Positions 6,533 to 56,612 of a DNA stretch of 64,000 nucleotides are shown here, piece by piece. Position numbers and translations under genes: made by a program. The notes under the pieces are model-generated. The model worked only from the letters and a program-made list of their open reading frames with translations, had not been told where the DNA came from and did no database searches. The number at the start of each line of letters is the position of its first letter. Position 1 is the first letter of the stretch. Where the stretch lies: positions 186,001 to 250,000 of IMG/VR virus record IMGVR_UViG_3300036715_003906; one strand, written 5' to 3'.

Positions 6533-7489
6533 TCAACCCCCGAGGAAGGCTTCGGCGAAGATCGACTTGAGATGAAAGGGAACCTGGATCTTGGTGGCCC
6601 GGCGATCGGCCGCCATCCCCCGCAACATCACCCGCAACGAGTCCCACCCACGCCTCGGCCCCTTGGGCCCCAGCTCGCGCAGGTCCCCCAGGCGGTCTTG
6701 GTTGAGGCAGCGGTCGGGGCAGGTGGGCAGCATGAGGAGGTCGTGAAGCAAGAGGTCGAGGAAGTGGCAACCGAGGTCGATGTCGCGCTCCAGGCTGTCC
6801 ACCAGGGAAAAGGTGGCCTGTAGGTCTCGCCGGGAGGCGGCCTGGAGGAGCGACAGGATCTTGTCACGCAGGACCAGCTTGCCTCCGCCCCAGAACTGGA
6901 GCGCCCGGCCAACCGACCCTTCGCTCAGACGACTGATGACAAGTGCTTTGTCGGTGTCGGGTTCGTGCTGCGAAAGCACCGATTGCACGAAGGCTAGCGG
7001 TAGGGGCAAAAAGAATACCTCCCCACACCTCGACCGGATCGTGGGGATCACGGCGTGAATGTCGTGGGCAAGGAGGAAAAAGCGGGCGAAGGGCGGGGGC
7101 TCTTCGAGGGTCTTGAGGAGGGCCCCCGCGGCGGCGGGGGTCAGGCGATCGACCCCCTCCAGGATGACCACCCTGAAGGCCCCCTGGGACGGGTAATCGA
7201 GGAGCGACGCGAGGACCTCACGGACGGCCTCGACCCCGATGTCCTTCTCCCCCGCCCGCACCTGCACCACGTCCGGGTGAACGTCCTGCCGGATCTGTTC
7301 GCAGTTCAGGCAGGCGCAAGCGTAGGTACGGTCCCCGGTGCAGAGGAGCGTGCGCGTCGTGAACACCGCCCCGGTCCTCCGTCCCGTACCCTCCGGACCA
7401 TGCAGGATCAAGGGGCGCGTCAGCCGGCCACTCACCACCGCGGCGAGGTAACGTGCCGCCGTCTTCTGTCCGACAATCCGATCGAGCAC
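6533..7489 (-). CDS. holB: DNA polymerase III delta-prime subunit
   Basis: IVGQ, GPEGTGR, Zn-finger cysteines, HPDV, ALLKTLEEPP, PTIRSRC; GTG start after GGAGG. Confidence 0.92.
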   Translation of the reverse strand: MLDRIVGQKTAARYLAAVVSGRLTRPLILHGPEGTGRRTGAVFTTRTLLCTGDRTYACACLNCEQIRQDVHPDVVQVRAGEKDIGVEAVREVLASLLDYPSQGAFRVVILEGVDRLTPAAAGALLKTLEEPPPFARFFLLAHDIHAVIPTIRSRCGEVFFLPLPLAFVQSVLSQHEPDTDKALVISRLSEGSVGRALQFWGGGKLVLRDKILSLLQAASRRDLQATFSLVDSLERDIDLGCHFLDLLLHDLLMLPTCPDRCLNQDRLGDLRELGPKGPRRGWDSLRVMLRGMAADRRATKIQVPFHLKSIFAEAFLGG

Positions 7490-7664
7490 CAGGGGCCTCC
7501 GGTCGTTCCATGAGCTGTGGGCGACGGAGGGGGGGAACCGCTTGCAGGTGGAACACGGCCAGGAAGTTCTGACCGCATCCCTGACACACAAACCGGTGGG
7601 GTTCCTGACCACTCGCCGCGAGGAAGGAGCGGCAGGCTGTACACCGCATCATTCCCTCATCCAC
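7449..7664 (-). CDS. Small Zn-ribbon protein (end drawn at in-frame TTA; canonical stop only at 7218)
   Basis: CTAC...CQGC; start overlaps the upstream stop. Confidence 0.55.
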
Positions 7665-8475
7665 GGAGACGCCCCTGCTGTCCGAGGAAGCCCTGGACCT
7701 CGCGGTAGGGGACCAGGTCCGGGAGCTTGTCCCCGAGGGCCTGCTGCGACGTCTCGGCAACCCAGGCGTCGATGCCCGCCTTCCCCCACGCCATGTAGTA
7801 GTACGAGGGGCCCGTGAAGTAGGACGCGATCCCGTCGGCGTACACCTTGGGGACCATGCCAAGGGTCCAGGCCGCCACGGCCAGGTTGACCGTGTAGCCC
7901 CGCTTCTCCCAGAAGGTTCGCCAGGGGGCCGGGAAGGGCGCAAGGGGGGCCAGGGCGAGCAGCAGGAGCAGGCCCTTGACCCAGCCGGTGAAGGCAAAGG
8001 CGAGCCCCACCCCGAGCGCGCCCCAGAGGATGTAGAGCAGGTAGGCGAGAGGGCTCCCCACGTAGACCGCCGCCAGGCCCCCCGTCACGGCACCCGCCAC
8101 GAGGCAGGCCAGGGGCCAGGAGTCCAGGCGAGCCGCCGCCACGTAGGCGAGGAGACCGAAGGGCGCCAGGATCTGGGGGAAGAGGTACGACAGGCTGAAC
8201 CAGAAGGGGTGAGCGGCGTGGTCGAGCAGGTGGACCCACTCGTGAGCGAGGACCGTGATGCTCCCCTTCGGGCTGCTCTCGTAGATCGCCCGGGAGGGGA
8301 AGTAGACCGTCGTCCCGAGCGTGGTCGTAAAACGCGTCATGAAGTCGCGATGGAAGGGCCGCACGAGGCCCCCGAGCACCCTCATCCACCCGACCTCGTC
8401 CTTGAAGGCGACCCGGAACGCCGGGACCGACGCCCGCACCCTGTCCTCGAACGCCCGCAGATCCGTTGTGTCCAT
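7657..8475 (-). CDS. Membrane protein with HEXXH zincin motif
   Basis: AHEWVH, hydrophobic segments, downstream WEKRGY. Confidence 0.7.
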   Translation of the reverse strand: MDTTDLRAFEDRVRASVPAFRVAFKDEVGWMRVLGGLVRPFHRDFMTRFTTTLGTTVYFPSRAIYESSPKGSITVLAHEWVHLLDHAAHPFWFSLSYLFPQILAPFGLLAYVAAARLDSWPLACLVAGAVTGGLAAVYVGSPLAYLLYILWGALGVGLAFAFTGWVKGLLLLLALAPLAPFPAPWRTFWEKRGYTVNLAVAAWTLGMVPKVYADGIASYFTGPSYYYMAWGKAGIDAWVAETSQQALGDKLPDLVPYREVQGFLGQQGRLRG

Positions 8476-8494
8476 CGGCGCCTCCCTCGGGGGG

Positions 8495-8713: not shown

Positions 8714-8731
8714 CTCGGGTCTCCTCTGGAT

Positions 8732-9121: not shown

Positions 9122-9145
9122 ATCCCCGAAGGGGGGACAAATGAA

Positions 9146-11184
<2,039 letters not shown>

Positions 11185-11219
11185 CCCCGTCTCCTACGGG
11201 AAGAGGCCCGCGGGCGCCA

Positions 11220-22275: not shown

Positions 22276-22573
22276 GTTGTCGAACCAGATCGATCCGGCC
22301 CTGGGGCGTCGCCACCCCCTGCCGCACCTCCGCCACCTCCTCCGCCGTCCACCCCGGACGGCGGACCCGCAGCGAGGCGGGTGTTCACCGCCACGATGCC
22401 GATCCGGGGGACCTCGTTGCCGACCCTGGACCCGATCGGACGGGCCAAGGGGTTGTCCGCGGGGAAGGGCTGCTCCTTGCGAAGCAGCGCCTGCTCCCGG
22501 ACGGTCTGGAGGAGCTGGAAGATGCAGGTGTACTGGGCCATCGTGACCCAGGTGTAGCATGACGATTTTTCTG

Positions 22574-22960: not shown

Positions 22961-23017
22961 ATTGTTGGTGGGACCGGCGCAAGGCCGACCTCGTTCCCCG
23001 GACAAACCGGCACCCTG

Positions 23018-23091
23018 TGCTCACGGTGGGAGTCGAACCCACAAATCCCCGGGTTTGAGTCGGGTGCCTATGCCGGTTCGGCTACGAGAGC
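23018..23091 (-). tRNA. tRNA-Leu(CAA), short variable loop
   Basis: Leu-type D arm; loop CT CAA AC; A73. Confidence 0.8.
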
Positions 23092-24610: not shown

Positions 24611-24682
24611 TGGCACCCCGTGTGGGAATCGAACCCGACCCCGGATTTCAATCCAGTGCTCTACCGATTGAGCTACCCCGGC
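24611..24682 (-). pseudogene. tRNA-Phe(GAA)-like with unpaired acceptor stem
   Basis: Canonical D arm and TTGAAA loop, but GCCGGGG cannot pair with ACGGGGT. Confidence 0.6.
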
Positions 24683-24740
24683 GTCGCCACACTGCATCGC
24701 GTTCACCCCCGCGCAGGGGAAGGGCCTGTGGCAAGCCCCT

Positions 24741-25945: not shown

Positions 25946-26533
25946 ATGACCTTCCTCCGTCAAGCCTCCCTGGCCCGGCCGACCCGAACCTTCACCAGCC
26001 AGGTCTTCGGGGGGCCGTGGGACGCCTTCGTCGAGCGCTGGGCCCCGGTGGTCCATGCCTTCGTCGGGGGTGCCCTCGGGCCCTACGGGACGGAGCCCGG
26101 GGAGATCATCCTCCCCCTTGCGGACGTCGACCACGCCTCGGGGGCCACGGCCTCCTTTCAGCCGGGGACGGGCCAGGTCCGCCTCTCGACCGTCACCGCG
26201 GGCCTCCCGGGGATGACCCTGGAGAAGCTCACCCACGAGATGATCCACGGCTCGCTCTCCCAGTTCCCGGAAGGGGACCCCTTCTACGAGGAGGGCTTCG
26301 TCGACTTCTCGACCTGGCTCCTCGCTCACGCGCCCGTCTGGGGGGAGCACCGGCAGGCGATGATCGACGCGGCGGCCTACAACATCGGCCAGCGGCGGGA
26401 CCGGGCCATGAAGGGGGTCTCCGACTACGACCGGAAGCGCTGGGCCGGCGGGACCTACGCCATGCTCGCCCACGGCCCCTGGCTCATCTCCCGCCTCAAG
26501 ATGAAGAAGGCCGAGCTGGACTTCACCTGGTAA
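25946..26533 (+). CDS. Zincin-like metallopeptidase
   Basis: THEMIH plus downstream YEEG. Confidence 0.7.
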   Translation: MTFLRQASLARPTRTFTSQVFGGPWDAFVERWAPVVHAFVGGALGPYGTEPGEIILPLADVDHASGATASFQPGTGQVRLSTVTAGLPGMTLEKLTHEMIHGSLSQFPEGDPFYEEGFVDFSTWLLAHAPVWGEHRQAMIDAAAYNIGQRRDRAMKGVSDYDRKRWAGGTYAMLAHGPWLISRLKMKKAELDFTW

Positions 26534-26785
26534 CTTGGCCGCGGCCTTGGCCTCCTTGCGGATCGCCTTGCCGTGCGTGCCGATGAAGGCCGCCCGGGCT
26601 TCCTCGCTCAGCCACTCGCAGCGCTCGTCCTCCGCCGTCTGCTCGACGACCGACCCGACCGCTGCCCGACCGACCTCCTCGACCACGACGGTGCCCTTGG
26701 GGGACACGGTGCCGTTGATCGTGTACTCGACGGCGCCGACGTGGAAGGAGAGGGCGAAGGTCTTGTTGTTGAGGTAGCTGGCCAT
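26531..26785 (-). CDS. Hypothetical early protein (end drawn at in-frame TTA)
   Basis: ATG 4 nt after a TTGATT-N17-TAGTAG promoter; GC3 bias to ...AKAAAK. Confidence 0.55.
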
Positions 26786-27077
26786 GACACTACTACGCAG
26801 TGCCCCCCCGGGAATCAAAAGCTGGGTCGTGTACATTTTGCAAAATGCCGACGGGCTCCTCTACACGGGGATCACGAACGACCTCCCGCGCCGGGTCGGG
26901 CGACACAATCGGGGCCAGGGGGCCCGGTACACGAAGGGCCGCGGGCCCTGGTCCGTGGCTTACACGGAGCCCGCCGAGGGGCACGGGGCGGCGCTCCGAC
27001 GGGAGCGGGCGATCAAGAAGCTCAGCCGGGCCCAGAAGCGGAGGATGATCACTTCTCCTGGGGGAGCGACGCCATGA
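26784..27077 (+). CDS. GIY-YIG nuclease (YazA/UPF0213-like)
   Basis: VYIL..ADG.LYTGITND..RR...HN.G.GARYTKGRGP, ALRRE.AIKKLSR. Confidence 0.85.
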   Translation: MTLLRSAPPGIKSWVVYILQNADGLLYTGITNDLPRRVGRHNRGQGARYTKGRGPWSVAYTEPAEGHGAALRRERAIKKLSRAQKRRMITSPGGATP

Positions 27078-35163: not shown

Positions 35164-35468
35164 GCCCCCTGCTCCCCACCGAAGAACACCTCGCCACCCT
35201 GCCTCGGGCGATCTGGATGCAGGACGGGGTGAACCTCGTGATCTACCGCGGCTCCCCCGAGGACATCGTCCGGGGCCTCCTCCGCCAGAAGGGCGTCCCC
35301 GCCCGGGGCCGGCTCCGCCCCGCCCTCGGCGTCCTCAGCGCCCTCCTCGCCCGGGAACGAGGCATCCTCATCGACATGGCCGATCCGGTCCCCGAGGGAG
35401 CCGCCCCCGCCCTCTTCGTTCATGCCCTCCTGGTCACCCGCATGGCCCGCCCCCTCGGGGACGCCTTA
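35160..35468 (+). CDS. Hypothetical protein (end drawn at in-frame TTA after PLGDA)
   Basis: GC3 bias stops at TTA; canonical stop at 35648. Confidence 0.55.
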
Positions 35469-35900
35469 CCCGGAGCCTGGGAGGCCCCTTCCTGGGCCTT
35501 TGGACCCTTCCCCCTTACCCAGGAAGGGGTCGGGGCCTCCGGGGCCTTCCTGGGCCACTCCTCCTCGAGGAAGGCCCGGAGGTCCTCGAGGATGGCGTCG
35601 GCGGCCAGGTCAAGCCGGGCGAAGGGAAAGAGGCGCCGGGCACGGTAGACCTCGTCGGAGAAGTCCGCGACGGTGGGCGGGTTCAGCCCGACCCGCCCCT
35701 GGACCCAGCGGTCGAAGAAGAGGGCGTCACTCCGCCGGTCCTCCCCGAAGACCAGGATGAGGCCCTTGCCGTGAATCCCGTCGCGGCGGACCCGGAGGCC
35801 CACGGCGCGCTCGCGTCCGTTGTAGAAGGGGAAGGTGTCGATCTCGATGTCGTAGCGCGGCTCGTCGTCAAGCCAGGGGGCCCTGGAGGCCAAAGGATGC
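35420..35900 (-). CDS. Hypothetical protein (start uncertain)
   Basis: PFYNGRER...FGEDRRSD coding-like stretch. Confidence 0.5.
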
Positions 35901-35927
35901 GTTACCCCGGCGGTGTAGGCCGGGGAC

Positions 35928-36113
35928 ATGCAAAACCACGATCGGGTCTGGGGTGCGCTCGGGGCGGTCTGCGGGTTCCCGGCGCTCACGACGCCGTTCC
36001 TGCTCAGGGCGGGCCGCCCGCACCTGCCCCTCTGGACGGTCCTCGGGGGCCTCGTGGGCGTCTTCGCTTGCCAGGCGTACGGGAAGCGGGCGGACGCCCG
36101 GGTCCGGGGCTAA
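35928..36113 (+). CDS. Small two-helix membrane protein
   Basis: GGTGTA motif 10 nt before ATG; two hydrophobic segments. Confidence 0.6.
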   Translation: MQNHDRVWGALGAVCGFPALTTPFLLRAGRPHLPLWTVLGGLVGVFACQAYGKRADARVRG

Positions 36114-36692
36114 GAGCAGGCCGCGGGCCTGGCTGATCTTGGTGGCGATGCGCTGGGCGGAGCCACGGCCGGCCGTGGTCTTCACCTGGAAGAGCCCGCG
36201 GACCTCGCAGCGGTCCTGGCCCGCCACGGGGCAGGAGAGGTCGACGCGGATGAGGTGCCCTTCGTTTGCCCCCTTGGCGGCCGTCTCGGTCGCCAAGGGG
36301 CTCGGGCACCAGGTCCGTGCCGCGGACGCCCCACCCCACCCCGGAGCCCTCGATGGGCATCCGGCGGACCCGCTTCTGGAGGTCCGCCACGACGTTCGTC
36401 ACCCTCCGCTGGCCGACCTTGTGGAGCTGGCCCGTGGTGTCGCCCGTCACGGGGTCGACATCGTAGCGCCCGTCGGTCCGCTCGCTATCGCCCTTGACAT
36501 CGTGGTCTCGCCCGCCCGGTGCCGTGGAAGGTCTGGTACGTCACGATCCGGGCGTTGGCCCGGCGGGGCTTGCCCTGGGCATCGGTGCCGAGGACCCCGG
36601 TCTTGGAGATCAACGTCCCCGGGGAGGACTCGGTCCAGGTGAGAGGAGTGTTCGTCCTGTCCCCCCGCTACACCACGGTGTACAGGTCGGCC

Positions 36693-37298
36693 ATGAGCCA
36701 CCCCTCCGCCGACTCCCCCACCCCCGCCCAGCTCGACACCGCCTTCCTCCATCTCTGGACCACCCGCGAGATCCGTAGCTTCGCCCCGCACCCCATCCTC
36801 GATGCCCTCGTGGCCGCGAACCGGGCCGTGGTCGAGGTAGCACCCCCCGCCCTCCGTCCGACCGGTACGACCGAGCGGACGTGGGTCTACCGGCCTCACC
36901 CCTCGGCGGATGTCATGATCGTCCCCTTCCCTGACCCGACGCCCCCGGCCTCCCCGACCCCCGAGGTCGCCGAGGTCCCCTTCGACGTGTACACGCAGGT
37001 CGACCACCGGGTCGGGGTCATCCTCTCGGCCGCCGCCATCCCGAAGAAGAAGAAGCTCCTCGACCTCTCGATCGACCTCGGGGAAGCCACCCCCCGCCGG
37101 ATCATCTCCGGCCTCGCCCTGGCCCGCAAGCCCGAGGAGCTGATCGGTCTCCGCGTCCTGGTCGTCACGAACCTCCCGCCCCGGGACTTCGGCGGGGGCC
37201 TCATCTCGCGCGGGATGATCCTCGCGGCCTCCTACGGGGACGACCTCGCCCTCGTCACCGTCGACCGGCCGGCCCGGGCCGGCACCCGGGCCACCTGA
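36693..37298 (+). CDS. tRNA-binding OB-fold protein (Trbp111/CsaA/MetRS C-terminal type)
   Basis: FDVY..VDHRVGVI, KLL.L.IDLGE..PRRIISGL, VVTNLPPR, SRGMILA; GGTGTA motif 10 nt before ATG. Confidence 0.88.
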   Translation: MSHPSADSPTPAQLDTAFLHLWTTREIRSFAPHPILDALVAANRAVVEVAPPALRPTGTTERTWVYRPHPSADVMIVPFPDPTPPASPTPEVAEVPFDVYTQVDHRVGVILSAAAIPKKKKLLDLSIDLGEATPRRIISGLALARKPEELIGLRVLVVTNLPPRDFGGGLISRGMILAASYGDDLALVTVDRPARAGTRAT

Positions 37299-37808
37299 TG
37301 GCCTCCCCCGCCCCGAAGAAGGCCCCCGACGACATGGCGGCCCTCTGCCTCTCCTGGGCCCTTCGGACGGGCCCTCTGGCGTCGTCCGGGGCCCAGGCTC
37401 TCACCCTGGCGGATACGGACGCGGGCCCGGCCCTGGTGGCGCAGGTCCTCGGGCGCCTCGGGTCCAGCGTGCTCTCGCTTCTCCTCGACACGGACGCCCC
37501 CTTCCCGGAGGCCCTGATCAAGCAGCAGCCCGGGCACGCGGCCTACGTCGAGATCCGGGCGTCCTCCCGGTCCCGGCTGGCCCGCCGGCTCGGGTGGCGC
37601 GGTGGGGACGCCTACCGCGTCTCGGGGGAGTCCCTCGGGTTCCACCTGGCCTTGCACGTCAGGGTCCCCTACGCGGACGCCCTCTGGCTCTGGGGGGCGG
37701 CGCTCTTCTCGGGCACGCCCCCCTCGCTTCACCCCCACCTCACGGTCTCCCGCGCCCCCCTGGGCTACGTGACCCTTCGCCTCCACCTCCACCCCCGGAG
37801 ATCCCCTG

Positions 37809-38171
37809 ATGCCCCCCCTGTCCACCGCGCTCCTGCTCACCGACCTTCCCCCCGGCTGCGAGGACCTCACCCTCCTGCTCTCCTGTGAGGGCGGGATGCG
37901 CGTCGCCCTGGACCTCTTGATCGCCCGGCCCGCGCCCCCCACGGCGGCCGAGGTGCGGATGCTGGTCGACCACTGGTACTCGATGCCGGGGCACGGGGCG
38001 GGGGGCATCCTCCATGTCGCCCTCGACGACGGCAACCTCGACGACGGCAACCTCCGCTGGCTCCGGGACGAGGCGACGGCCGCGGGCAACGTCCTCGGGC
38101 ACCTGCTCGCCACCGTGCTTCTCCGGGTCCCCGAACCGGAGCGAAAGCGCTGCCTGTGGGGTGAGGACTAG
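37809..38171 (+). CDS. Hypothetical protein
   Basis: GGILHVALDDGNLDD; GC3 bias. Confidence 0.6.
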   Translation: MPPLSTALLLTDLPPGCEDLTLLLSCEGGMRVALDLLIARPAPPTAAEVRMLVDHWYSMPGHGAGGILHVALDDGNLDDGNLRWLRDEATAAGNVLGHLLATVLLRVPEPERKRCLWGED

Positions 38172-38497
38172 CCCTCGAAGGGCTGGTCGTGGAGCGCCCC
38201 GGCCAGCACGAGCAGGTGGGTCACCCACCGCTGAACCTCGACCAGATGGTCGCCCCCGACGTCGCTCAGCGTGATGCCCACGGTCGCCTTGACCATCCCC
38301 TCCCGCACCTCCAGCCGGAGCCACAGGCACTGGTCCTCGTCCGGCTCGGGGTTCGGGGCGCCGACCACCGGGGGGCGGAAGGAGACGCGGGTCGCCTGGT
38401 ATGCCCCCCTGAGCCCCTGGAGGTAGCGGAGGGGCGTGTGCAGGAAGGGGCAGAGGGCGGAGGCTTCGATGACCGTGGTGATGTCGGAGAGGAGCAT
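38168..38497 (-). CDS. Hypothetical protein
   Basis: GGAGG and GGTGTA upstream. Confidence 0.55.
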   Translation of the reverse strand: MLLSDITTVIEASALCPFLHTPLRYLQGLRGAYQATRVSFRPPVVGAPNPEPDEDQCLWLRLEVREGMVKATVGITLSDVGGDHLVEVQRWVTHLLVLAGALHDQPFEG

Positions 38498-40276: not shown

Positions 40277-40693
40277 TCATGGAAGGACCCCCTGGGCCCG
40301 GAGCTTCGCCACGCCCGCCGGGGTGGTCATGGCGTGATGGTTGACCGTGGTGACGTAACCGAGGTCCCGCAGGGTATGCACGATCCCGTAGGCGGACCTG
40401 GGCCCGTTGCTCTTGTCGTCGTAGCGGTAGGCGTAGCCCTGGGGGCTGGCCGCTTTCGTCAGGATGTCGAGGTCCTTGCCCTTGAGGGGCATGGAGCGGC
40501 CGTAGGCTCGCCGGGCCGCCCGCAACTTCTCCGATGCCTTCCGTAACGGGTCCTCCAGCGCCCTCTTCTGAGCATTGGCTTTCTCGAGGACATCCTCGAT
40601 CTCCTCGCGAGCTATCTCGTGGGCTTCCGTCTCCGCTTTGGCTGCGGCAACGGCCGCAGCCAGGCGCACTTCTTCGTCGGTCTTCTTGGCCAT
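40277..40693 (-). CDS. Hypothetical protein (coiled coil plus wHTH-like end)
   Basis: TTGATT-type promoter and AGGAG RBS. Confidence 0.65.
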   Translation of the reverse strand: MAKKTDEEVRLAAAVAAAKAETEAHEIAREEIEDVLEKANAQKRALEDPLRKASEKLRAARRAYGRSMPLKGKDLDILTKAASPQGYAYRYDDKSNGPRSAYGIVHTLRDLGYVTTVNHHAMTTPAGVAKLRAQGVLP

Positions 40694-44152: not shown

Positions 44153-44538
44153 AAGTAGATCACAGGAATGCCACGGTCATGTGGCATCCCGTCACAGGGG
44201 ATCGTCGACCAGGGGCCTCCAGCAGAGGGGGCGCAGGGTCCGCTCGAACCGCAGGAGGAGGTCGGCGTACTCCTCGGTCTCCTGCCTCTCCAGGATGAGC
44301 GACGGAAGCTCCCCCGCGAAGCTGCCCCTCCCTCACCAGCAGGGTGACCTTGAGCACGGCCTGCCCCCGGATCTCCAGCTCGAAGGACAGGTCCGCCTCC
44401 CGGAACTCCCGGAGCCCGATCGCCAGGATTTTCTGACACCCCGGGGGGACGAAGGCCCCGAGCGGGGAGTCCGGGGCCTTCGCGGCGAGGAGGGCAGAGA
44501 GGGGGACGGGTTCCATGCCCTCTCTCTACCCCGGGACG

Positions 44539-45375
44539 TCACATGCACCAGCCGCCAATCTTGCCCGAAGGCTGCTCCCCGGCCTCGACGGCCTGCTTGA
44601 TCGTGTAGATCGGCAGGCTCTTTTTGAAGGTGTGCCCGATCTCCGCCTCGACCTCGACGTACTGGTCGAGCAGGGCCCGGTTGTGGTGCCCAGCCAGCAG
44701 CAGGGCGTCCCGGCTGGCCAGGACGCAGAAGCAGCAGGACAGCCGGGGCATCCCGAGGTCGTAGGCCCGGTGGTAGGGGACGCCGCTCGCCTTGATACAG
44801 GCCCACACCTGGGTCGTGGTCCAGCGGAAGATCGGGAACAGGGTGTCGACGCGGCGGCGGCCGTTGGAGGCCATGGCGTCCTCCTGGAAGGGCACCTTCT
44901 GCGCCCGGGCGGGGCTCTCGTCGGCCCGGATGCCCATGCAGTTGAGGATGCGCGCCTGGTAGCCCTTGCCCCGCTGGGCTCGGACCTCGTCGGCAAGCTG
45001 GGTCAGGACCTTGTGGACCTGTCCGCGCTTGTGGTCCGACGTGCAGTAGCGGGCCTCCGACGAGGGCCACATCTTCCGCTGGCGGACGTGGTCGAGGAGG
45101 TCCCCCTGGGGCCGGCTCACTTTGACGAAGCGGAGGCCGTAGTGCTTCGCTTGCTCCTCGGCGAGTTCCGCGGTCCCGGCCCACTCCACCCGGCCGAGGT
45201 CGCAGTGAACCACGACCAGGCGGCTCTCGATCCCGAGGCGGCGGCAGACCTCGACCATCAGGGTCAGCAGGGCCTGCGAATCCTTGCCGGCCGAGCTGTT
45301 CACCACGATCTTGTCGTAGGACCGCAGGTCGCGGGGCAGGATGATCGGGGAGGCAAGGAGGTTGAGCTGGACCAT
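44539..45375 (-). CDS. PAPS-reductase family protein
   Basis: NSSAGKDS, RYCTSDHK, GIRADES.AR, RLSCCFC. Confidence 0.88.
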   Translation of the reverse strand: MVQLNLLASPIILPRDLRSYDKIVVNSSAGKDSQALLTLMVEVCRRLGIESRLVVVHCDLGRVEWAGTAELAEEQAKHYGLRFVKVSRPQGDLLDHVRQRKMWPSSEARYCTSDHKRGQVHKVLTQLADEVRAQRGKGYQARILNCMGIRADESPARAQKVPFQEDAMASNGRRRVDTLFPIFRWTTTQVWACIKASGVPYHRAYDLGMPRLSCCFCVLASRDALLLAGHHNRALLDQYVEVEAEIGHTFKKSLPIYTIKQAVEAGEQPSGKIGGWCM

Positions 45376-45415
45376 GGGGCTACTACGCGCGCCCCCGGCC
45401 CGAATCAAAACTGGC

Positions 45416-45883
45416 TCAGGTCGATTCTTCCGGGAGGGGGGTCATGGTCCAGAGGGGCTCGACGACCAGGCACCCCTCGACGACCCGGACCCGGTCCATC
45501 AGCTCCAGGGGGTCCGCGATCGGCCAGGGGTCCGCCATCGTGACCTGGTGGGTGCTGAGCCAGATGACTGCCCCCAGGTTCGCCGCCCGGACCCGCTTCT
45601 CCACTTCGTCCGTGGGGAGGGCCGGGTCGAAGATGGCGAGGACGATGCAGCTCGCCAGCAGCGCCCCCTCGACCCGGTAGACCCGGGCGACCCAGCCCGC
45701 CCGCGAGGCGTCCTTCTCGTCCACCAGGTAGAAGCCCTGCTCCGTCATGTCGGCGCTCTCCTCGCCCGCGGGCCAGGGTAGCCGCGGGACCGCCATGGGC
45801 GGCTCCTCCAGCGTCATCAGGACGCCCTCGACCCTCTCCACCTCGATCGGGACACCCTGCGAGCCTGTGTAGGGTCGTTTCAT
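45416..45883 (-). CDS. Hypothetical protein
   Basis: GGTGTA motif 10 nt before ATG. Confidence 0.6.
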   Translation of the reverse strand: MKRPYTGSQGVPIEVERVEGVLMTLEEPPMAVPRLPWPAGEESADMTEQGFYLVDEKDASRAGWVARVYRVEGALLASCIVLAIFDPALPTDEVEKRVRAANLGAVIWLSTHQVTMADPWPIADPLELMDRVRVVEGCLVVEPLWTMTPLPEEST

Positions 45884-46339
45884 GGGCGGGACGTACACCG
45901 TTCGGCGATCGAGAGCGGGCCCTCCCAGTACGCGATCTGCTTGGTCATGCCCCGCAGGGGGCACCCGATCGGGTGATCCCCCGCGACGGAAAGCGAAGGG
46001 TCCTGGATTCCGCAGTGCAGGCAGGCCCGGTAGGGGTTGGTCCCCGGAGGGCGCCATCGCGCCTCCTCGATCCGCCTCCGGGGGCGGTAGATTCTTCGCT
46101 GAATCCTCTCGTCCCGGGGAATGTGGTTCGAGCGCATGGGGCTACCCGGCGCACAGGGCCCGGCTGCGCCGGCGGTCAGCCCGGCGGGTGACCTTCTTGG
46201 CCCACCGGCGGTTCTGGGGGGTGGGGCTCGTGAAGGGCTCGAAGAAGTCGTGCCCGCGGAAGGAGCGGCACGCCTGGCAGGCCCGGAGGGCCTGGTTCAG
46301 TGCTTTCATGGGAGGGTTCCTGGTAGGGGGGTAGGGGGA

Positions 46340-46594
46340 TCAGAAGCTGGCCAGGAAAGCGGCCCACTCGGGGGGCGTGTCGTGGACCTCGGCCTGGCGG
46401 ACCGCGTCGAGCGCCACCTCGATGTCCCAGAAGCGGGCCGAGAGTTGCCCCCGGAGGCGCCAGGCCAGCGGGCCGGTGGCGCCTCGGAGGACTTCCTCCA
46501 TATCCTGGGTCTGGGCCTGCTCCGTCTGGAGCTGGGCGAGGGGGGCGAAGAAGAAGAGGCGGTCGAGGAGGGGGGTGGAGGCGTCAGCGTGCAT
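46340..46594 (-). CDS. Hypothetical early protein
   Basis: Leaderless TTGATT-type promoter. Confidence 0.6.
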   Translation of the reverse strand: MHADASTPLLDRLFFFAPLAQLQTEQAQTQDMEEVLRGATGPLAWRLRGQLSARFWDIEVALDAVRQAEVHDTPPEWAAFLASF

Positions 46595-46601
46595 GGGGGT
46601 A

Positions 46602-47327
46602 CTACGCGGGGGCACCCTGCGAATCAAACGAGGGACCGCACGATTCTTCCACCCGGGCTCCCGGGGTGCGCCAGACGAGGCCGTCGGGAACGCAGGCGTC
46701 GATCAGCTCCTGGCGCCACCGGAGGGCATAATCGAGGCAGTTGTTGCAGTGTTTGTGCCCCCGGGGGCGGCGAGGCCCGGGCAGTTCGTGACCGGGGAGC
46801 GGGGGGTGGTGGGTTGCCGACTCGGACCAGGCGAGGGAGTCCGAGGAGGCCATGACGTCGTAGGCGGCGCGGACCCCGTCCTTCTTGAACCCGAAGCCGT
46901 GGACCTTGAGCCCGTGGACGTCGTGAAGGTTCCGCATCAGCAGCTCGGCGGTGAACATCGCCTGCCGGCGGCAGACCGACCCGACGCCGACCAGGGGGAG
47001 CTTCGCGAGGTGGACGCCGGCCTTCTCGTACATCTCGATGGGGTCGTAGTAGTCCGGCCGGGCCCACCCCTGGAGCGTCGGGACCCATGGGACCTCGGGG
47101 GCGCGGCTCAGCAGCTCGACGTAGCTGAGGACCGATCGGACCTGGTGCTCCTTCACGGACATACCGGTCCGCTCCAGCATGATCGGCTCACACATCCAAT
47201 CCTGAGTCGCGGCCCATCGCAGGTTGCCGATGTCCCTCATGTACCGGCGGACGCGGTCCGCGTAGTCCTGGGGCGGCATGGTCCAGCGGCCGAAGAGCCC
47301 CAGCTCCGTGAAGCCGCACCGGCTCAT
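46602..47327 (-). CDS. TGT-fold (DpdA-like) protein, N-terminus apparently truncated
   Basis: GFTEL, QDWMCEP, PTLQG, GVGSVCRRQ, HGFGFK, SSDSLAWS. Confidence 0.65.
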   Translation of the reverse strand: MSRCGFTELGLFGRWTMPPQDYADRVRRYMRDIGNLRWAATQDWMCEPIMLERTGMSVKEHQVRSVLSYVELLSRAPEVPWVPTLQGWARPDYYDPIEMYEKAGVHLAKLPLVGVGSVCRRQAMFTAELLMRNLHDVHGLKVHGFGFKKDGVRAAYDVMASSDSLAWSESATHHPPLPGHELPGPRRPRGHKHCNNCLDYALRWRQELIDACVPDGLVWRTPGARVEESCGPSFDSQGAPA

Positions 47328-50800: not shown

Positions 50801-51991
50801 GACTGGGTCTGCGCTCAGTCCCCCGACGAACGCCAGGAGCTGTACGTCGCCCTGGGCACGAAGCGGAAGTCGATCACCCTCGACGTCTCCCCAAAGGGCG
50901 GGGCACCCCACGCCCCGGCCCCCGTGGCCAAGGTCATCCTCTACCTGAGCGCCAGTTCGATGTTCGCGACGATGACCATGAAGGCCGGGGAGCGGAACCC
51001 CGTGACGGCGGCGGATGCCCTCGGGTTCTTCCACGACGTCCTCGCCCTGGTCGACCTCCTCGACACGATCGACTGCTGAGGGTTTTGTCATGGCTGCCCT
51101 CCCTCTTGTTCATCGCGAAAAGCGACCCACTCGCTTCCTCGGCCGTCTCTTCCCCGGCCGGCTGGTCCATGCCTTCACGGTCCGGTGCGAGATGCCAGGC
51201 ACGGACCGCGTCATGGAAGCCCGCTACTTCGTCTACGAGCGGCGGACCGACGTCGAGGTCCGCACGAACGACCCCTCTCCACCCCCGCGACCATCCGCGG
51301 CTTCCTCGTCGTCAACGAAATGCGCTTCTGACCATGAAAACCTACGTCGAGACCTTCCTGCACTTCGTCGCCCTCTACGCCCCTCTCTTCCTCGACCACA
51401 AGGCCGCCATGGCCGAGTACCCCAGCTACGGCCAGTCACGCGAACGGAGCCTCGTGTCCCGCCGCCCCCCGGTGCCGAAGACGGGCCTGTCGGCTGTCAT
51501 GGCCGCCCGGGACTACCTCGACCGCTGCGGTGGGGAGGCCCTGGCCATGGACCCGGAGCCCGCGGCCCGGCTCTACCTGGCTTCGTACTTCGACGTCACC
51601 TTGCCGGCTCCGGAGCCCGCCGCGGAAATGTGAGGTCCTGCTTTTGATTCCCGAGGGGGGTCTGCGTAGTAGTCCCATGACCACCTCGACCAAGACCCCC
51701 GCCCTCAAGACCCTCCGCCCCGCCCGTGACTTCGTGAACACCCTCGCGGGGTTCGCGGAGTTCAAGTTCACCGGCTCGCTCGCCAATAACCGCCTCGAAA
51801 AGAAGATCTCGGCCTTCTTCGCCGAGATGGAGCGCCGCGCCCCCGGGTCCTTCACGAAGGCCCCCCAGGCCCTCTGGGTCTACTGCGCCTACGAGGACAA
51901 GGACTGCTACACGGTCCGGGTGGTCCTGCGGTCAAGCCGGGCGTTCTCGGAGGCGTACACCGCCTTCGACCGCGAGACCCGCGGCTTCTGA
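47811..51991 (+). other. Array of small hypothetical genes (47811-47993, 48076-48204, 48201-48539, 48527-48721, 48751-49041, 49053-49247, 49301-49510, 49788-50054, 50051-50491, 50502-51079, 51090-51331, 51334-51633, 51677-51991)
   Basis: Each unit starts at a conserved promoter or an overlapping stop/start; two carry homopolymer frameshifts. Confidence 0.65.
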
Positions 51992-51995
51992 GGGC

Positions 51996-52436
51996 TCAAC
52001 CCAGCCGGGCCTCAAGCCCGGCTGCGATCAGTTTCAACTCGTCGGGGGTGGCGTTGTGCTTGATCCCGTTGGCCCGATGGCTGATGACCCAGACGTTGCC
52101 CTTGACGTAGCCCAGCTCGGGCCGAAGGCGGTCCAGCGAGGGACTCTCCGGGGTCGGCCCCTTCTTCCCCTTACAGAGCCCCGAGACGAGCGGGATGCCC
52201 AGAAGGGGACATACCTCCGGGATCACGATGTCGGCCAGCTCGATGTCGAAGGGCAGCCCCTGCTTCTTGGCCCGTTCGCGAGCGGAGGCGAGCATCCGAA
52301 GCTCGGGCGTGACCTTCGTCCGCAGGTACTCCAGGGATCGCTGCCGCGCCGCGGCGACCCACTCGGGGTCGGCCCGCTTGCGCTGGTAGTAGTCTCGTGT
52401 GTACTCTATTTGCCGGGCTTTGTCCTTGAAGGCCAT
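51996..52436 (-). CDS. HNH-like endonuclease
   Basis: CPLLG, SPSLDRL.P.LGYVKGNVWVISHRAN..K. Confidence 0.85.
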   Translation of the reverse strand: MAFKDKARQIEYTRDYYQRKRADPEWVAAARQRSLEYLRTKVTPELRMLASARERAKKQGLPFDIELADIVIPEVCPLLGIPLVSGLCKGKKGPTPESPSLDRLRPELGYVKGNVWVISHRANGIKHNATPDELKLIAAGLEARLG

Positions 52437-52467
52437 GCCCGACGAGTATCACACAAGACCAATATAA

Positions 52468-53070
52468 TCAATCCATGGCACAGTAATCGTGATGGTCGAT
52501 CCCCTCGCGGCCGAGGGCCTGGAGGATGTCGTTGTAGGTCATGGACTGGATGGCCCGGGCGTTGTCCTTGACCCAGCGGTAGAACTGCCCGACCGACTTC
52601 TTGCCCCGGGCGATGCAGGTCGGGGCGTTGTTCTCGTCGTTGATGTCCTCGATGCTGTACTGGTCGTAGCCGGCGATCACGGTGACGTGGGCGCCGCGGA
52701 CGATCAGCTCCTTGAAGGCACCCGGCTTGACGTCGACCCCCCGGAGCCAGCTCTCCCGGCCCTGCCAGCCGGTTTCGAGGGCCTCCTTGAACGCCTGCTG
52801 CATCCGGCCGAAGTCGGCGCCCCGCTTGCCGAGCATCATGAACTCGTCGGAGGTGCTCTCGATCGTCGTGCCGCCCGACAGGTAGAAGGTCATGCACTTC
52901 TTCCCCCGCTTGCCGGCGTTTTCGAGCTGCGTGATCTCGATGGCGTCCGCGTACCGGTGGACCCTCCACTTCTCGTTCTCGAAGGTCTCGCCGCGGCCCA
53001 TGGCCACGATGTTGTGCCCAGCTTGCCGATCCAGCGTTCGCTCGATCAGACGGTCCCGAAGCTCGCTCAT
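52468..53070 (-). CDS. Hypothetical protein
   Basis: MSELRDRLIE..., GC3 bias. Confidence 0.7.
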   Translation of the reverse strand: MSELRDRLIERTLDRQAGHNIVAMGRGETFENEKWRVHRYADAIEITQLENAGKRGKKCMTFYLSGGTTIESTSDEFMMLGKRGADFGRMQQAFKEALETGWQGRESWLRGVDVKPGAFKELIVRGAHVTVIAGYDQYSIEDINDENNAPTCIARGKKSVGQFYRWVKDNARAIQSMTYNDILQALGREGIDHHDYCAMD

Positions 53071-53867
53071 CACACGCCTTTCTGCCCGGCCATGGTGTAG
53101 CCGAGCGGAGGGACCCAGAGGTCCCAGGTTTCTTTCCACGTCAGGTAGTCGGGCGAGAACCAGGCAAAGCCCCTCTCACCCCAGCTTGTGCCCCACGAGT
53201 TCTTGACCAGGAAACGGTCCCCGACGCAGCCCACGATCATCATCGCGTGCCCGCCGTCCATCGGCCCCACGGGCCGCGGCAAGGTCCCGCCCCGGTAGCT
53301 ATCGAAGGACGTCGCGAGCATCGTCCCGAAGACCACCGGCTGCTTCCGCCGTAGCGCCGCCCGGATGTCATCGAGGCGGGCGTCCCCCTCGCTGTCGATC
53401 CGGTAGGCCCCGTGAATCCGCCGCCCCCGGGCCTTGCGCTGGGCGAGGAGCGAGGGAGAGACGAAGACCTGGGCCTCGTCGTAGGGCCAGTCGGTCTCCT
53501 CGCAGATCCCGAAGCGGCTGATCGCGTCGAAGCACGAACGGAGGTAGGTCCCGCCGTCCGTCCCGAGGCTCCCGTCGAGGGTCCGGGCCATCCCGTAGAC
53601 GAAGAGCCGGCTGAGCTGCGGCACGGGCCGGGGCTCCCGCCCCTCCTGGGCCGCCTGGGCCTCCTCGGCGATGGCCGTCACGACCTCGATCGAGTCCGCG
53701 GTGGCGTTGCCGGCGCAGGCCCCGAGGTGGAGCTGGTCCGAGGGGGTGCAGTAGGCCCGGAGATCTACGTCCCCCGTCAGCAGGGCCGGCGTGGCCGCCT
53801 TGAGGGCCCCGAACCGCCGATCGGCGTCCCAACCCCCCGGGTCGCGCTGGTAGTAGACCTTGTCCAT
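53070..53867 (-). CDS. Papain-like (C1A) cysteine protease
   Basis: QLHLGACAG, SRLFVY, GGHAM, KNSWGTSWG. Confidence 0.9.
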   Translation of the reverse strand: MDKVYYQRDPGGWDADRRFGALKAATPALLTGDVDLRAYCTPSDQLHLGACAGNATADSIEVVTAIAEEAQAAQEGREPRPVPQLSRLFVYGMARTLDGSLGTDGGTYLRSCFDAISRFGICEETDWPYDEAQVFVSPSLLAQRKARGRRIHGAYRIDSEGDARLDDIRAALRRKQPVVFGTMLATSFDSYRGGTLPRPVGPMDGGHAMMIVGCVGDRFLVKNSWGTSWGERGFAWFSPDYLTWKETWDLWVPPLGYTMAGQKGV

Positions 53868-53917
53868 CGCTCCCCCAGCCCGACAGGAACTTTATCACTT
53901 ATGGCCCGCGGGGAAGC

Positions 53918-54233
53918 GATGCGACTCCTCCTTGTCCTCGCGGTCCTCTGCCTGGGATGCGTCCCGTCCAGGGAGGCCCCCTCCCCGAACCCCCCGGTCC
54001 CGCCCGACACGGAGATGTGTCCAGCGATGTGCGTCCACCTCCGGGAGATGCACTGCGAGGAGGGCCAGCCCTTCTACGACAGCGACCAGCCCGGGCCCCT
54101 CGACGTCCCGAACACGACGTGCGAGGTCTTCTGCCAGACCCAGCAGAAGAATGGCGTCTTCGTCAACCCCCGGTGCGTGATCCTGGCCCCGGCCTGCGGG
54201 GAGATCGAAGCCTGGCGCAAGAAGGTGTGCTGA
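53918..54233 (+). CDS. Cys-rich lipoprotein
   Basis: Signal peptide with LGC lipobox; multiple Cys. Confidence 0.65.
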
Positions 54234-54234
54234 G

Positions 54235-55944
54235 ATGGCCGTCCGTCCCCTCTGCCAGGTCAAGGACGGCGGCGGCTCCTTCGTCGCCACCACGGACGGG
54301 GTGAGCGTCACCGCGGGCCAGACCCTCACAATCCGCCTCGCCGACGTGACCGACGTGGTCGCCTGGTTCCTGGTCCTGACCGGGACCGACGAGACCACGT
54401 TCCCCCCGGCCCTTGCCAGCGTCAACCCGTCCACGAACCAGGTCTCCTCCCCCGGCGCCCAGGTCACCTTCACCTTGCCGGGTGGGGCCGGCCGCGCCCT
54501 GATCTTCGAGTCCACCGTGACGGGCCCCGGAGGCCCCCAGGTGACGACCTTCGCGCTCTACGTACCCACGACCCACGGCTACCGGGTCGGGGCCACGGGG
54601 GAGCAACGGGAGGGCAGCACGTCCTATGGGTGGGTCACGAAGCTGAACCCTCTGATCCGCCAGGGGGCCCCCGTCGTCCGCTACGACGACACCATGGCCT
54701 CCCCCACCCTCGGGGCCTCCACGGTACAGGGTGCCCTCGACGCCCTCAAGGCCCTCACCGGCGGCTTCACGGCCGGGGGCGACCTCTCGGGCTCCTCGTC
54801 GAGCCAGACCGTCATCGGTCTCCGCGGCGTACCGCTCGACTCGACGCCTCCCACCGACGGCCAGGTCATCACGTACAGCAGCAGCCTGGGGCGATGGGTC
54901 TACGGGGCCGTCCCCTCGGGCAGCTTCACGGCGGGTGGGGATCTCTCCGGGTCAACCACCAGCCAGACGGTCAACAAGATCAAGAACCTGGCGATCATCG
55001 GGTTCCCCTCGAACGGGCAGGTCCTCACCTACTCGAACACGGGACCGAACCTCTACTGGTCAACCGTGTCGGGCGGAGGCGGGGGGGTCTTCCCCGCGAT
55101 CTTCGGTACGGGGGCGGACGGTTCCGCGACCGTGTCCGGGACCGTCACCTACACCCGCGACATGCACTTCACGGACCTGACCGTCCATGTCGGTGGCAAG
55201 ATCGTCGTGGCCGGGTTCCGTATCTACGTCCAGAACACGCTCACGATCGATGCGGGGGGCATCCTCACGGCGGACGGCGCCGACGGCGTTGGCCGGACCG
55301 GCGGCGGCACCGCGGGCGGCGGTGGCGACTCGACCATGATTCTGGGCGGAGGGGCCGAGGGGGGCGCGGGTGGCACCGCGGGTCAAGGGGATCAGGGCCA
55401 GACCTTCCGCTCTGCCAAATGGGGCGGTGATGGCGGAGCAGGGGGTCAAGGCTACCGCGACCTATGGCCGGGGGGGGCGCCCTCCCCTGACGTGGGGCTG
55501 CCTGTGGGGAACCCTCCCGATCTGGAGGGACTTCTCGGGGGCTTCTGGCGTACCCGTACAGGCGCCGGTCTCCAGTTTTACCCCTGGGACGGGGGCGGTG
55601 CAGGGGGTGGTGGGGGTGGGGGTGCAGCCGGGGACGGAGGCAAGGGTGGCGGGGGTGGGGGTGTGATCGCCCTCATCGCCAAGAACCTCGTCAACAACGG
55701 GGTCATCTCGGCCAACGGCGGCAACGGCGCGGACGCGGACCCCGCCTGGGCAGGTGGCGGCGGGGGCGGCGGGGGCGGGGGCGTCGTCACCCTCTTCGTC
55801 AAGACCTACACGGGCCTCATCGCCCGGGCCTTTGGCGGAGCGGGCGGGCTCAAAGGAAACGGGAGCCCCGAGGGAGGCTCCTCGGGCAACGTGAACGGGA
55901 GCCCCGGGAGCGACGGGAAGGTCTACGTCTTCGAGGCGAGCTGA
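54235..55944 (+). CDS. Glycine-rich tail/fibre protein
   Basis: Repeated AGGDLSG; GQV.TY motifs; GTGADG and ANGG Gly-rich C-terminus. Confidence 0.78.
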   Translation: MAVRPLCQVKDGGGSFVATTDGVSVTAGQTLTIRLADVTDVVAWFLVLTGTDETTFPPALASVNPSTNQVSSPGAQVTFTLPGGAGRALIFESTVTGPGGPQVTTFALYVPTTHGYRVGATGEQREGSTSYGWVTKLNPLIRQGAPVVRYDDTMASPTLGASTVQGALDALKALTGGFTAGGDLSGSSSSQTVIGLRGVPLDSTPPTDGQVITYSSSLGRWVYGAVPSGSFTAGGDLSGSTTSQTVNKIKNLAIIGFPSNGQVLTYSNTGPNLYWSTVSGGGGGVFPAIFGTGADGSATVSGTVTYTRDMHFTDLTVHVGGKIVVAGFRIYVQNTLTIDAGGILTADGADGVGRTGGGTAGGGGDSTMILGGGAEGGAGGTAGQGDQGQTFRSAKWGGDGGAGGQGYRDLWPGGAPSPDVGLPVGNPPDLEGLLGGFWRTRTGAGLQFYPWDGGGAGGGGGGGAAGDGGKGGGGGGVIALIAKNLVNNGVISANGGNGADADPAWAGGGGGGGGGGVVTLFVKTYTGLIARAFGGAGGLKGNGSPEGGSSGNVNGSPGSDGKVYVFEAS

Positions 55945-55963
55945 AGGTACGGACGTCGCGCCC

Positions 55964-56410
55964 TCACCTCGCCCCGAGCTTGTGGAGGCACGCCACGAAG
56001 CCCGGGTTCCCGATCGACCGCCGCTGCCTCCGCCGCTGGACCCTCCGTACCGCGTCTGCCCCCGAGCACCCGGTACGGAGGTGGAGGGCCAGGGCCGACA
56101 CCAGGCCCGAGCGGTTCCGGCCTTGCCCACAGGTCACGAGGACCCGATGCCCTCCCCCCCCCCCCGTTTCTGCTACCCGCCTGGCGGCGCCGAGCGCCAG
56201 GGCCAGCTCCTCCCGGGTAGGGAGGCGCTCGTAGCTGTCGTCGTTGGGGGCGTGGATGACCTGTAGCCCGGGGAACCTCTCGGCCGGCGGCGGGTACTCG
56301 GCCGCGCAAAGGACAAGCACCCGGAAGCCCACGGCATGAAGCCCGGGGCCGGGGTCGGGCCGGCCCAGCCTCCCTGGTGGAGCGTGTGGTAGAGCAGCGT
56401 CGCGTCGATG
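55964..56410 (-). CDS. Dual-specificity phosphatase (frameshifted 5' part)
   Basis: VLVTCGQGRNRS (CX5R). Confidence 0.75.
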   Translation of the reverse strand, partial: HRRDAALPHAPPGRLGRPDPGPGLHAVGFRVLVLCAAEYPPPAERFPGLQVIHAPNDDSYERLPTREELALALGAARRVAETGGGGGHRVLVTCGQGRNRSGLVSALALHLRTGCSGADAVRRVQRRRQRRSIGNPGFVACLHKLGAR

Positions 56411-56612
56411 GCTGCCAGGGTAAAGCGCCCTGGGGGACGGCCCCTCTCGGGTTCGTCCTACGGACCGGCCGCAGGGCCATGGTCTTCGGGGGCGTTCGGT
56501 CGGGGGCGGAGACCGCTCGGTAGAGCGTGTCGCTGAGGTCCGCCAGCTCCCGAGACGTCTGCTCCAGGGCTGCGTGGGCGGCTTGCTCTTCAGGGGTCAT
56601 TGCTTCCTTGCC

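Follow-up and report, generated by a model that had tools for sequence, protein, structure and literature searches.

The question raised by this locus is whether a sense codon, TTA, can mark the ends of genes in a bacteriophage. We analyzed a 64,000-nucleotide (nt) stretch of DNA, hereafter the window, that corresponds to positions 186,001 to 250,000 of IMG/VR virus record IMGVR_UViG_3300036715_003906 (JGI contig Ga0373634_0000035; 251,474 bp). The contig is from a GC-rich jumbo phage (68% GC overall and 66-71% across the window). Jumbo-phage functions encoded in the window include a RecD2-like helicase, ribonucleotide reductase, clamp-loader proteins, GroEL, a DNA methylase and a homologue of Ro60. 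A block of about 33 tRNA genes together with a transfer-messenger RNA (tmRNA) is located at 14.3-25.7 kb, and a separate tRNA gene with the anticodon UAA is at 62035. We found five small genes that have no canonical stop codon and that meet an in-frame TTA at their boundary. The pattern is real and non-random, and sequence alone cannot separate a TTA stall or stop signal from gene decay as its origin.

An initial annotation of the window had listed eight in-frame TTA codons, seven of them at the apparent ends of genes whose reading frames otherwise run on into their neighbors. All eight coordinates hold the triplet. At seven of them (7449, 13741, 26531, 31311, 36111, 40544 and 56421) the plus strand reads TAA and the TTA is on the minus strand; at 35466 the TTA is on the plus strand. 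The sites are as follows.

7449-7451, minus strand: TTA that lies out of frame inside a clamp-loader-like gene (DNA polymerase III delta-prime family; 6533-7489), in an ORF overlapping the start of that gene
13741-13743, minus strand: in-frame TTA at the stop position of an HNH/EndoVII-like gene; complement of the TAA of plus-strand gene 13117-13743
26531-26533, minus strand: in-frame TTA closing gene 26534-26785; complement of the TAA of plus-strand gene 25946-26533; identical in contigs L007, L019 and L020
31311-31313, minus strand: in-frame TTA at the stop position of gene 31314-31814, within the 13-nt spacer to an inverted plus-strand paralogue
35466-35468, plus strand: in-frame TTA in the stop-less gene 35160-35465, 46 nt inside the 3' end of the opposing gene 35420-35929
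36111-36113, minus strand: in-frame TTA, complement of the TAA of plus-strand gene 35928-36113, with a TAG in the +1 frame (CTC TTA G)
40544-40546, minus strand: internal TTA, a sense codon (Leu50) of gene 40277-40693
56421-56423, minus strand: TTA after a 59-codon open reading frame (ORF; 56600-56424); a coding-like -1 frame follows, and then a shift into a DSP-phosphatase frame (55964-56332)

The description of seven of these as gene ends held in part. The run-ons are 180-669 nt long, but there is no credible gene at 7449, the site at 56421 belongs to a split locus, and the gene end at 35466 is uncertain. The 7449 site was removed from the set because its zinc-ribbon-like ORF has a non-coding composition (GC at the third codon position, GC3, of 0.65; codon score -0.44). 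Two other claims were borne out. At 13741, 26531 and 36111 the TTA is the exact complement of the TAA of a convergent gene, and the TTA at 31311 is at most one codon from the stop of the plus-strand paralogue.

Five credible genes, those at 13741, 26531, 31311, 35466 and 36111, have no canonical stop for 60-223 further codons. These genes, and the paralogue facing one of them, are listed below.

13744-14250, minus strand: stop-less HNH/endonuclease VII-like gene directly downstream of the tmRNA, start uncertain (phrog_3322, E = 6e-20)
26534-26785, minus strand: 84-amino-acid (aa) ORFan with no stop for 223 further codons (GC at codon positions 1, 2 and 3 of 0.63, 0.46 and 0.96)
31314-31814, minus strand: 167-aa gene of a small phage family with a GPHWxY motif; no stop; run-on of 66 codons
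30811-31300, plus strand: inverted, tail-to-tail paralogue of 31314-31814 with a +1 frame change at a G8 run (31050-31057); ends in TGA
35160-35465, plus strand: 102-aa ORFan with no stop until 35646, defined by composition only
36114-36507, minus strand: small stop-less gene in two frames, 36507-36301 and then 36293-36114, with the change at a C4 run near 36297

The five are small accessory genes, and all end at very closely spaced convergent junctions (spacers of -46 to +13 nt). A scan for stop-less genes by composition, blind to TTA, recovered these same five and revealed no gene that reads through an opposing TGA or TAG. The products of the run-on frames are not shared with other lineages. 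Gene callers mis-annotate such loci by omitting the gene, calling the shadow strand or calling the run-on.

The missing stops could in principle come from sequencing or assembly errors, or from mis-called genes in a GC-rich genome whose antisense frames stay open. The initial annotation had raised an error-prone assembly as a possible cause for some sites, which is unlikely. Contig L007, from the sister JGI sample 3300035661, matches positions 17049-37655 of the window with one mismatch (at 35425) and no gaps. Contig L010 is 100% identical over 51636-64000, and a Logan assembly of SRR11723145 (L011) is 100% identical over 54463-60162. A related lineage (ENA ERZ27263685 and Logan SRR9199084; L019 and L020; 94-97% identical) has the same TGG TAA CTT junction at 26531. 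Because independent assemblies agree, with no indels across five of the sites, random assembly error is unlikely; three to four assemblies, made with different assemblers from different samples, agree at every base. Mis-calling does occur here. The 7449 site is such a case, IMG chose shadow ORFs at 26583-26777 and 35136-35423, and several frame changes in the window fall at homopolymers. In contrast, at 13741 and 31311 homology settles which strand and which frame are coding, the stop-less strand has the better position-specific GC and codon scores at 26531 and 35160, and the long conserved genes are all intact. We consider artefact very improbable as the source of the pattern.

The single mismatch between the two JGI samples, the sole difference over 20.6 kb, is non-synonymous in both of the genes that overlap there. 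In 35420-35929 it affects the final codon (Ala/Thr), and in 35160-35465 the change is Ala/Val.

If TTA marks gene ends, it should coincide with the C-termini of homologous proteins, a comparison that the initial annotation had proposed. Where the comparison could be made, at 13741 and 31311, the two were 0-3 residues apart, using paralogues, a PHROG profile and outside homologues. Homologues of the 31311 family came from a full HMMER search of 1.8 billion representatives. The last residue of one (P0003; 160 aa, 42% identical) aligns with the residue directly before the TTA, and its gene ends CGG CGG TAG on contig L017 (69.5% GC). A second homologue (P0004) ends one residue away from the TTA, and the plus-strand paralogue ends one codon later. 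At 13741, the match to the phrog_3322 endonuclease profile ends three residues upstream of the TTA. An intact paralogue in the window (51996-52436) extends four residues beyond the same profile position, placing its stop at most one codon from the point equivalent to the TTA. The run-on here is 213 codons antisense through 13117-13743 and has no homology, and the gene itself was not called by IMG. Judged from these alignments, TTA occupies the stop position wherever this can be tested.

Two of the TTA sites lie in or adjoin genes for GIY-YIG or HNH endonucleases, of which the window has one (26784-27077) and three (12494-13021, 13744-14250 and 51996-52436), respectively. Contig L019 holds an extra 271-aa gene between the GIY-YIG and methylase genes that the window does not have. 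Another protein from the searches with the 31311 family (P0002) is 2,054 aa long and has ten repeats that match residues 46-93 of the family.

The 26531 protein has no homologues and no Pfam or PHROGs match. Its gene has a gene-like composition and the best codon score in the set, and the plus-strand ORF that IMG called over it (26583-26777) has the signature of a shadow frame (GC at positions 1, 2 and 3 of 0.43, 0.65 and 0.95). A single-sequence AlphaFold (AF2) model, of moderate confidence (pLDDT 62), has a beta-sheet and a C-terminal helix reaching residue 83. The stop-less state is common to the window and the lineage that has diverged by about 5%, and an in-frame 15-nt indel between the two keeps the frame.

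The 35466 protein also has no homologues and no Pfam or PHROGs match, and IMG calls the antisense ORF 35136-35423 in its place. Its true C-terminus is uncertain because the wobble positions of this frame coincide with those of the opposing gene and the last ~25 residues are poorly modeled (single-sequence AlphaFold). At 36111, where the pieces of the gene have no match in Pfam or PHROGs, the two-frame arrangement is reproduced in L007. The junction reads CTAAG, one base longer than the CTAG at 38168-38171 that convergent genes 37809-38171 and 38168-38497 have in common and that gives each of them a TAG stop; therefore, a single A/T insertion explains 36111. A TAA/TTA junction is like a shared CTAG in its extreme tail-to-tail compaction, and unlike it in giving a canonical stop to one gene only.

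We compared these boundaries with the use of TTA elsewhere. In the 76 genes with canonical stops, 1 of 14,986 codons is an in-frame TTA (the one at 40544). Replication genes from a walk along the contig have one TTA in 7,058 codons, in a sigma-like gene (L016), seven codons before its TGA. Of 760 in-frame codons that follow normal stops, one is TTA. The 76 genes end in TGA (53), TAG (16) or TAA (7), and three of the seven that end in TAA are the codon-aligned convergent partners at 13741, 26531 and 36111. From the code table, we infer that random single-base loss of a stop would give TTA in ~1/8 of cases. The rarity of TTA, the enrichment of TAA among partner stops, the ~1/8 expectation and the recovery of the same genes by a scan blind to TTA together indicate that the association of TTA with these boundaries is not random.

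The explanation that we favor, tentatively, is that ribosomes stall at a hungry UUA and are then rescued, the stop-less genes at convergent junctions being either selected or merely tolerated. A ribosome that meets UUA when the cognate tRNA is scarce would stall, and the stalled complex would be cleared by rescue and not by a release factor. Rescue could proceed through trans-translation, with the tmRNA of either the host or the phage and with Clp proteolysis as the next step, or through release-factor-independent hydrolysis or drop-off of peptidyl-tRNA with Pth. With stalling and rescue at UUA, the stop-less genes would behave like non-stop genes, and their output would be set by the amount of tRNA(UAA) and by the rescue capacity. 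UUA is nearly unused in this genome, and the outcome would have to depend on the supply of tRNA(UAA); if it were plentiful, translation would continue into the 60-223 antisense codons. Four elements of the window could take part in such a process.

62035-62110, plus strand: tRNA with anticodon UAA, class I (short variable arm), G73, three Watson-Crick pairs in the anticodon stem (47 bits)
61711-62070, plus strand: Pth2-like ORF, domain end at ~62032, adjoining tRNA(UAA)
14302-14654, minus strand: phage tmRNA with the tag ANDNVALVALAA (116.8 bits)
16571-17185, plus strand: phage ClpP protease gene

The tRNA(UAA) is atypical for leucine. It lacks A73 and a long variable arm, and it has mismatches at both ends of the anticodon stem. 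ARAGORN labels it (76 nt) and a CAA tRNA (23017-23091; 75 nt) as Leu, both of class I length, and from these features their amino-acid identity seems doubtful. The only in-frame stop of the Pth2-like ORF is the TAA that forms the anticodon of the adjoining tRNA(UAA); because this stop lies within the tRNA, a Pth2 mRNA cut by 5' processing of the tRNA would be non-stop. The presence of tmRNA, ClpP, Pth2 and tRNA(UAA) alongside the TTA sites is a co-occurrence and the links are putative; an IMG/VR scan with Pth2 likewise revealed nothing beyond co-occurrence to connect the Pth2-tRNA locus with the sites. A stronger form of the stalling explanation would make UUA a programmed, tRNA-dependent gene-end signal, with a single TAA/TTA triplet ending both convergent genes and the four elements serving as a toolkit. 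The level of tRNA(UAA) would then switch the accessory proteins between a normal length and a run-on or degraded form. We regard this stronger form as unlikely.

ARAGORN predicted 33 tRNA genes in the window, 32 of them in the 14.3-25.7 kb block, and 20 of those 32 reach the Rfam threshold for tRNA. Two predictions have odd anticodons, one of four bases (tcgg; 18853-18929) and one of two (ga; 24611-24684). The former was rejected as a suppressor of +1 frame changes because there is no CCGA in register at the junctions. Between tRNA-His and tRNA-Pro there is a coding-like ORF of 61 codons (22374-22556, minus strand) that is open until past the tRNA-Pro gene.

Several observations weigh against stalling and rescue. 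The phage has its own tRNA(UAA), and tagging by tmRNA would normally destroy the product. The five stop-less genes occupy five of the 12 convergent junctions in the window, and the chance of five out of five being convergent is ~0.0015. If their stops were ignored, 58% of ordinary genes would also run on for at least 30 codons, so a terminator of general use would be expected between co-directional genes as well. No shared motif could be assigned to the sites: TTACC is found at five of the eight, and also in 18% of all TTAs (TTAC in 49%). There were no terminator-like sites at the junctions, and folding of the sites gave z-scores of -1.3 to +1.2, none of them significant, with no processing hairpins. 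Frameshifting to a nearby stop is not the rule either, since at 31311 and 35466 the next 20 codons are free of stops in every frame. With no terminator, fold, motif or nearby out-of-frame stop, a general model of frameshifting to a stop or of processing fails. The examined part of the genome, ~35% (~90 kb), is itself a limited basis for the stalling explanation. In addition, the internal TTA at 40544, which the initial annotation had correctly recognized, is in a variable linker of a gene whose relative (P0008, in L018) is a continuous 139-aa ORF. The two are 64% identical over the entire length of that ORF, with conservation to either side of the codon, and the relative has TAC (Tyr) there. 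Because the relative encodes this gene as a single ORF, the TTA at 40544 must be decoded as sense. The suggestion in the initial annotation that UUA may be a stall or stop signal linked to the Pth2-tRNA(UAA) locus and tmRNA is partly contradicted by such observations and is speculative.

The 40544 codon bears directly on a true reassignment of TTA to stop in the phage-host system. Reading TTA as a stop gives tidy ends at the five junctions and agrees with the stops of homologues at 13741 and 31311, and TAA/TTA would be the only triplet that stops both strands. However, a protein conserved as a single ORF has an internal TTA, the cognate tRNA(UAA) has been kept, and no release-factor-like gene was seen in the ~90 kb examined. 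To our knowledge, no bacterial release factor reads U at the second codon position. TTA serves as a stop in the organellar code of NCBI table 23 (Thraustochytrium mitochondria), which has no cognate tRNA. The phage resembles that case in having TTA at gene ends in place of a canonical stop, and differs from it in encoding tRNA(UAA) and in having one TTA that is clearly sense. Among the explanations considered, reassignment is the most remote.

A further explanation is ordinary decoding, in which TTA is read as Leu by the host or phage tRNA(UAA). The proteins would then have long antisense tails, or their mRNAs would end soon after the junction, through convergent transcription or processing of the duplex, and would be non-stop for reasons unrelated to TTA. 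The sense TTA at 40544 and probably the one in the sigma-like gene, together with the presence of tRNA(UAA), favor this. The spacers at 9 of the 12 convergent junctions are -46 to +19 nt, leaving no room for terminators, and a non-stop gene under trans-translation is known, ArfA (PMC10107115). Ordinary decoding leaves unexplained why TTA is at every boundary and why the codon-aligned partner stops are all TAA, tails of 60-223 residues antisense to other genes cannot evolve freely, and the sites showed no processing hairpins. We think it improbable.

The remaining observations that count against stalling and rescue are lesions, and they speak for gene decay, a possibility that is nearly equal in probability to the one that we favor. 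An unbiased scan revealed about seven further small genes that jump frame at short G/C runs without TTA, at these loci:

17498-18008: frame change near 17796
30811-31300: frame change near 31050 (the G8 run)
36114-36507: frame change near 36297
37298-37809: frame change near 37800
44192-44522: frame change near 44316
51090-51329: frame change near 51280
55964-56600: frame change near 56340

The changes within 17-37.6 kb are reproduced in the sister sample. Near 44316 the gene carries a single inserted T that its 107-aa orthologue in L018, which is intact, does not have (locus 97% identical), and at 31311 the homologue in another phage (L017) ends in a normal TAG. No broken genes were found among the long conserved genes or among 24 replication genes outside the window (~34 kb). 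Uniform sequencing error was rejected because the frame breaks spare every long conserved gene, indicating that they are real lesions in dispensable genes. Disruption on this scale is unusually heavy for a phage.

Under decay, an accessory region at 13-57 kb would be gathering lesions, and the ORFs ended by TTA would be dead or dying. Stops would be lost by substitution, by small indels (CTAG to CTAAG at 36111) and by deletions that fuse the ends of convergent genes. The TTA would be partly forced, as the complement of a partner's TAA, and partly a coincidence; convergent junctions would be favored since a run-on there harms no downstream gene. Some of the TTA-ended genes themselves look worn. 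Between the window and its relative, gene 26534-26785 has 11 non-synonymous and 2 synonymous changes (pN 0.061, pS 0.036), a pN/pS of 1.7 from small numbers, whereas its flanks have values of 0.16 and 0.03. The gene appears to evolve without purifying selection, and the ratio, given the small numbers, fits either neutrality or diversifying selection. In the HNH gene, a Val aligns, by inspection, with the His of the SHRAN nuclease motif of the paralogue, which may reflect functional degeneration. The 36111 gene carries a frame change in addition to the missing stop, and the phosphatase gene at 56421 is split over three frames.

Other features of the five genes are difficult to reconcile with decay. 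With a target of 3 nt per gene, far fewer than five stop losses would be expected beside about seven indels. The boundary codon is TTA in five of five cases, where ~1/8 would be expected per free event, and the codon-aligned partners end in TAA in three of three, a stop found at 7 of 76 genes. The stop-less junction at 26531 has outlasted the split of two lineages with its frame kept through the 15-nt indel. The codon bias of the TTA-ended ORFs is still among the strongest in the window.

For the 56421 site alone, a different event can be proposed, UUA-triggered recoding of the type described for the Hau3 terminase. A peptidyl-tRNA(Ala) would leave the GCU that precedes UUA for a GCA 8 nt downstream, and translation would go on from there in the -1 frame toward the phosphatase domain. 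GC3-rich, coding-like codons resume in the -1 frame straight after the TTA, GCU and GCA flank the 8-nt gap in a small hairpin, the -1 frame segment (40 aa) has no start codon of its own, and there is a precedent (PMC10732093). On the other side, the frame changes again near 56340 without a TTA, no homology of the 40-aa segment could be detected across the gap, and the Pfam DSPc match covers the last frame only and is below the gathering score. Other TTA sites have no same-strand coding sequence downstream; at 13741, 26531, 31311, 35466 and 36111 the TTA is followed by antisense sequence only. Recoding at 56421 is quite improbable. The 56421 pieces have no match in PHROGs, and the IMG call at this locus is the whole 225-aa run-on. 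The phosphatase-like ORF includes one of two 12-base G/C homopolymers in the window, a G run at 56154-56165 that encodes a run of Gly; the other is at 63961-63972.

We compared the arrangement with known cases in which UUA or a missing stop affects gene output. In Streptomyces, competition of tmRNA with the bldA tRNA at UUA has been proposed (PMC2635970). As in bldA-type control (PMC2635970; PMC10732093), the phage genome is GC-rich (68%), TTA is nearly unused, there is a dedicated tRNA with a UAA anticodon, and the few TTAs are in accessory or regulatory-looking genes and linkers (40544). The Streptomyces UUA codons, in contrast, are inside ORFs, often near the 5' end, and are read as Leu once the tRNA matures, whereas those of the phage are mostly at the stop position, and the tRNA(UAA) is phage-encoded without the usual Leu features. 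UUA-triggered bypassing in the terminase of Streptomyces phage Hau3, and a UUA-G/A shift to a stop in the ORF upstream of adpA, have also been proposed (PMC10732093). The likeness to these proposals is that UUA would be the trigger of a non-standard event in a GC-rich phage; the UUA, short gap and frame change at 56421, and the UUA-G that gives a UAG in the +1 frame at 36111, are of this kind. In Hau3, coding demonstrably picks up again 7-10 nt further on, and the protein joined in this way is conserved; four of the five stop-less sites here have no same-strand continuation.

Non-stop messages and rare codons provide two further comparisons. In the arfA case (PMC10107115), a message has no in-frame stop and the amount of product is set by ribosome-rescue capacity; the phage has a tmRNA system and encodes the tmRNA itself. 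There, the non-stop mRNA is made by RNase III cleavage at a hairpin, whereas folding gave no comparable structure, and there is no defined processing or termination site, at the phage junctions. Stalling at rare codons elicits tmRNA tagging, according to work as cited in PMC2635970 and PMC3834316. The resemblance is that a scarce tRNA leads to a stall and tagging at the hungry codon ends the chain; the difference is that the known cases are internal codons of over-expressed genes, where tagging is quality control and leads to degradation, and not the usual way for natural genes to end.

Close relatives of the phage were not found in the phage, IMG/VR, JGI metagenome or GTDB collections searched. 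A megablast of the phage collection gave no match, and a tblastn of that collection with GroEL gave distant matches only (≤47%). IMG/VR scans with Ro60, its 283-aa neighbor, Pth2 and an alignment of the 31311 family recovered the source contig and three low-GC phages (44-49% GC) without synteny. Two metagenome scans and two genome scans gave no match, and the exact tmRNA tag was absent from 185,579 genomes.

Other genes of the window are of interest in their own right. The region 44539-47279 contains a PAPS-reductase-family gene (44539-45375) and a DpdA homologue (46602-47279), which suggests 7-deazaguanine modification of the phage DNA. L018 is without the PAPS-reductase gene, a deletion there fusing the neighboring ORFs. 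The Ro60 homologue (vWA_Ro60, phrog_850) is at 57604-59340, and no Y-RNA-like family scored above the Rfam threshold in the window.

The two most probable explanations would have different meanings for the biology of jumbo phages. If decay is true, this is an unusually heavy and recent decay of genes in the accessory region of a jumbo phage, with about a dozen lesions in 45 kb compared to none in 34 kb of replication genes. Should the TTA ends prove functional, natural genes of a bacterial virus would for the first time be seen to end on a sense codon by stalling and rescue, and genes arranged tail to tail could share a single triplet as a two-way terminator. Giant phages recurrently encode tmRNAs, and tRNAs for codons that they barely use, and the reasons for this are poorly explained; functional TTA ends would suggest a purpose for both.

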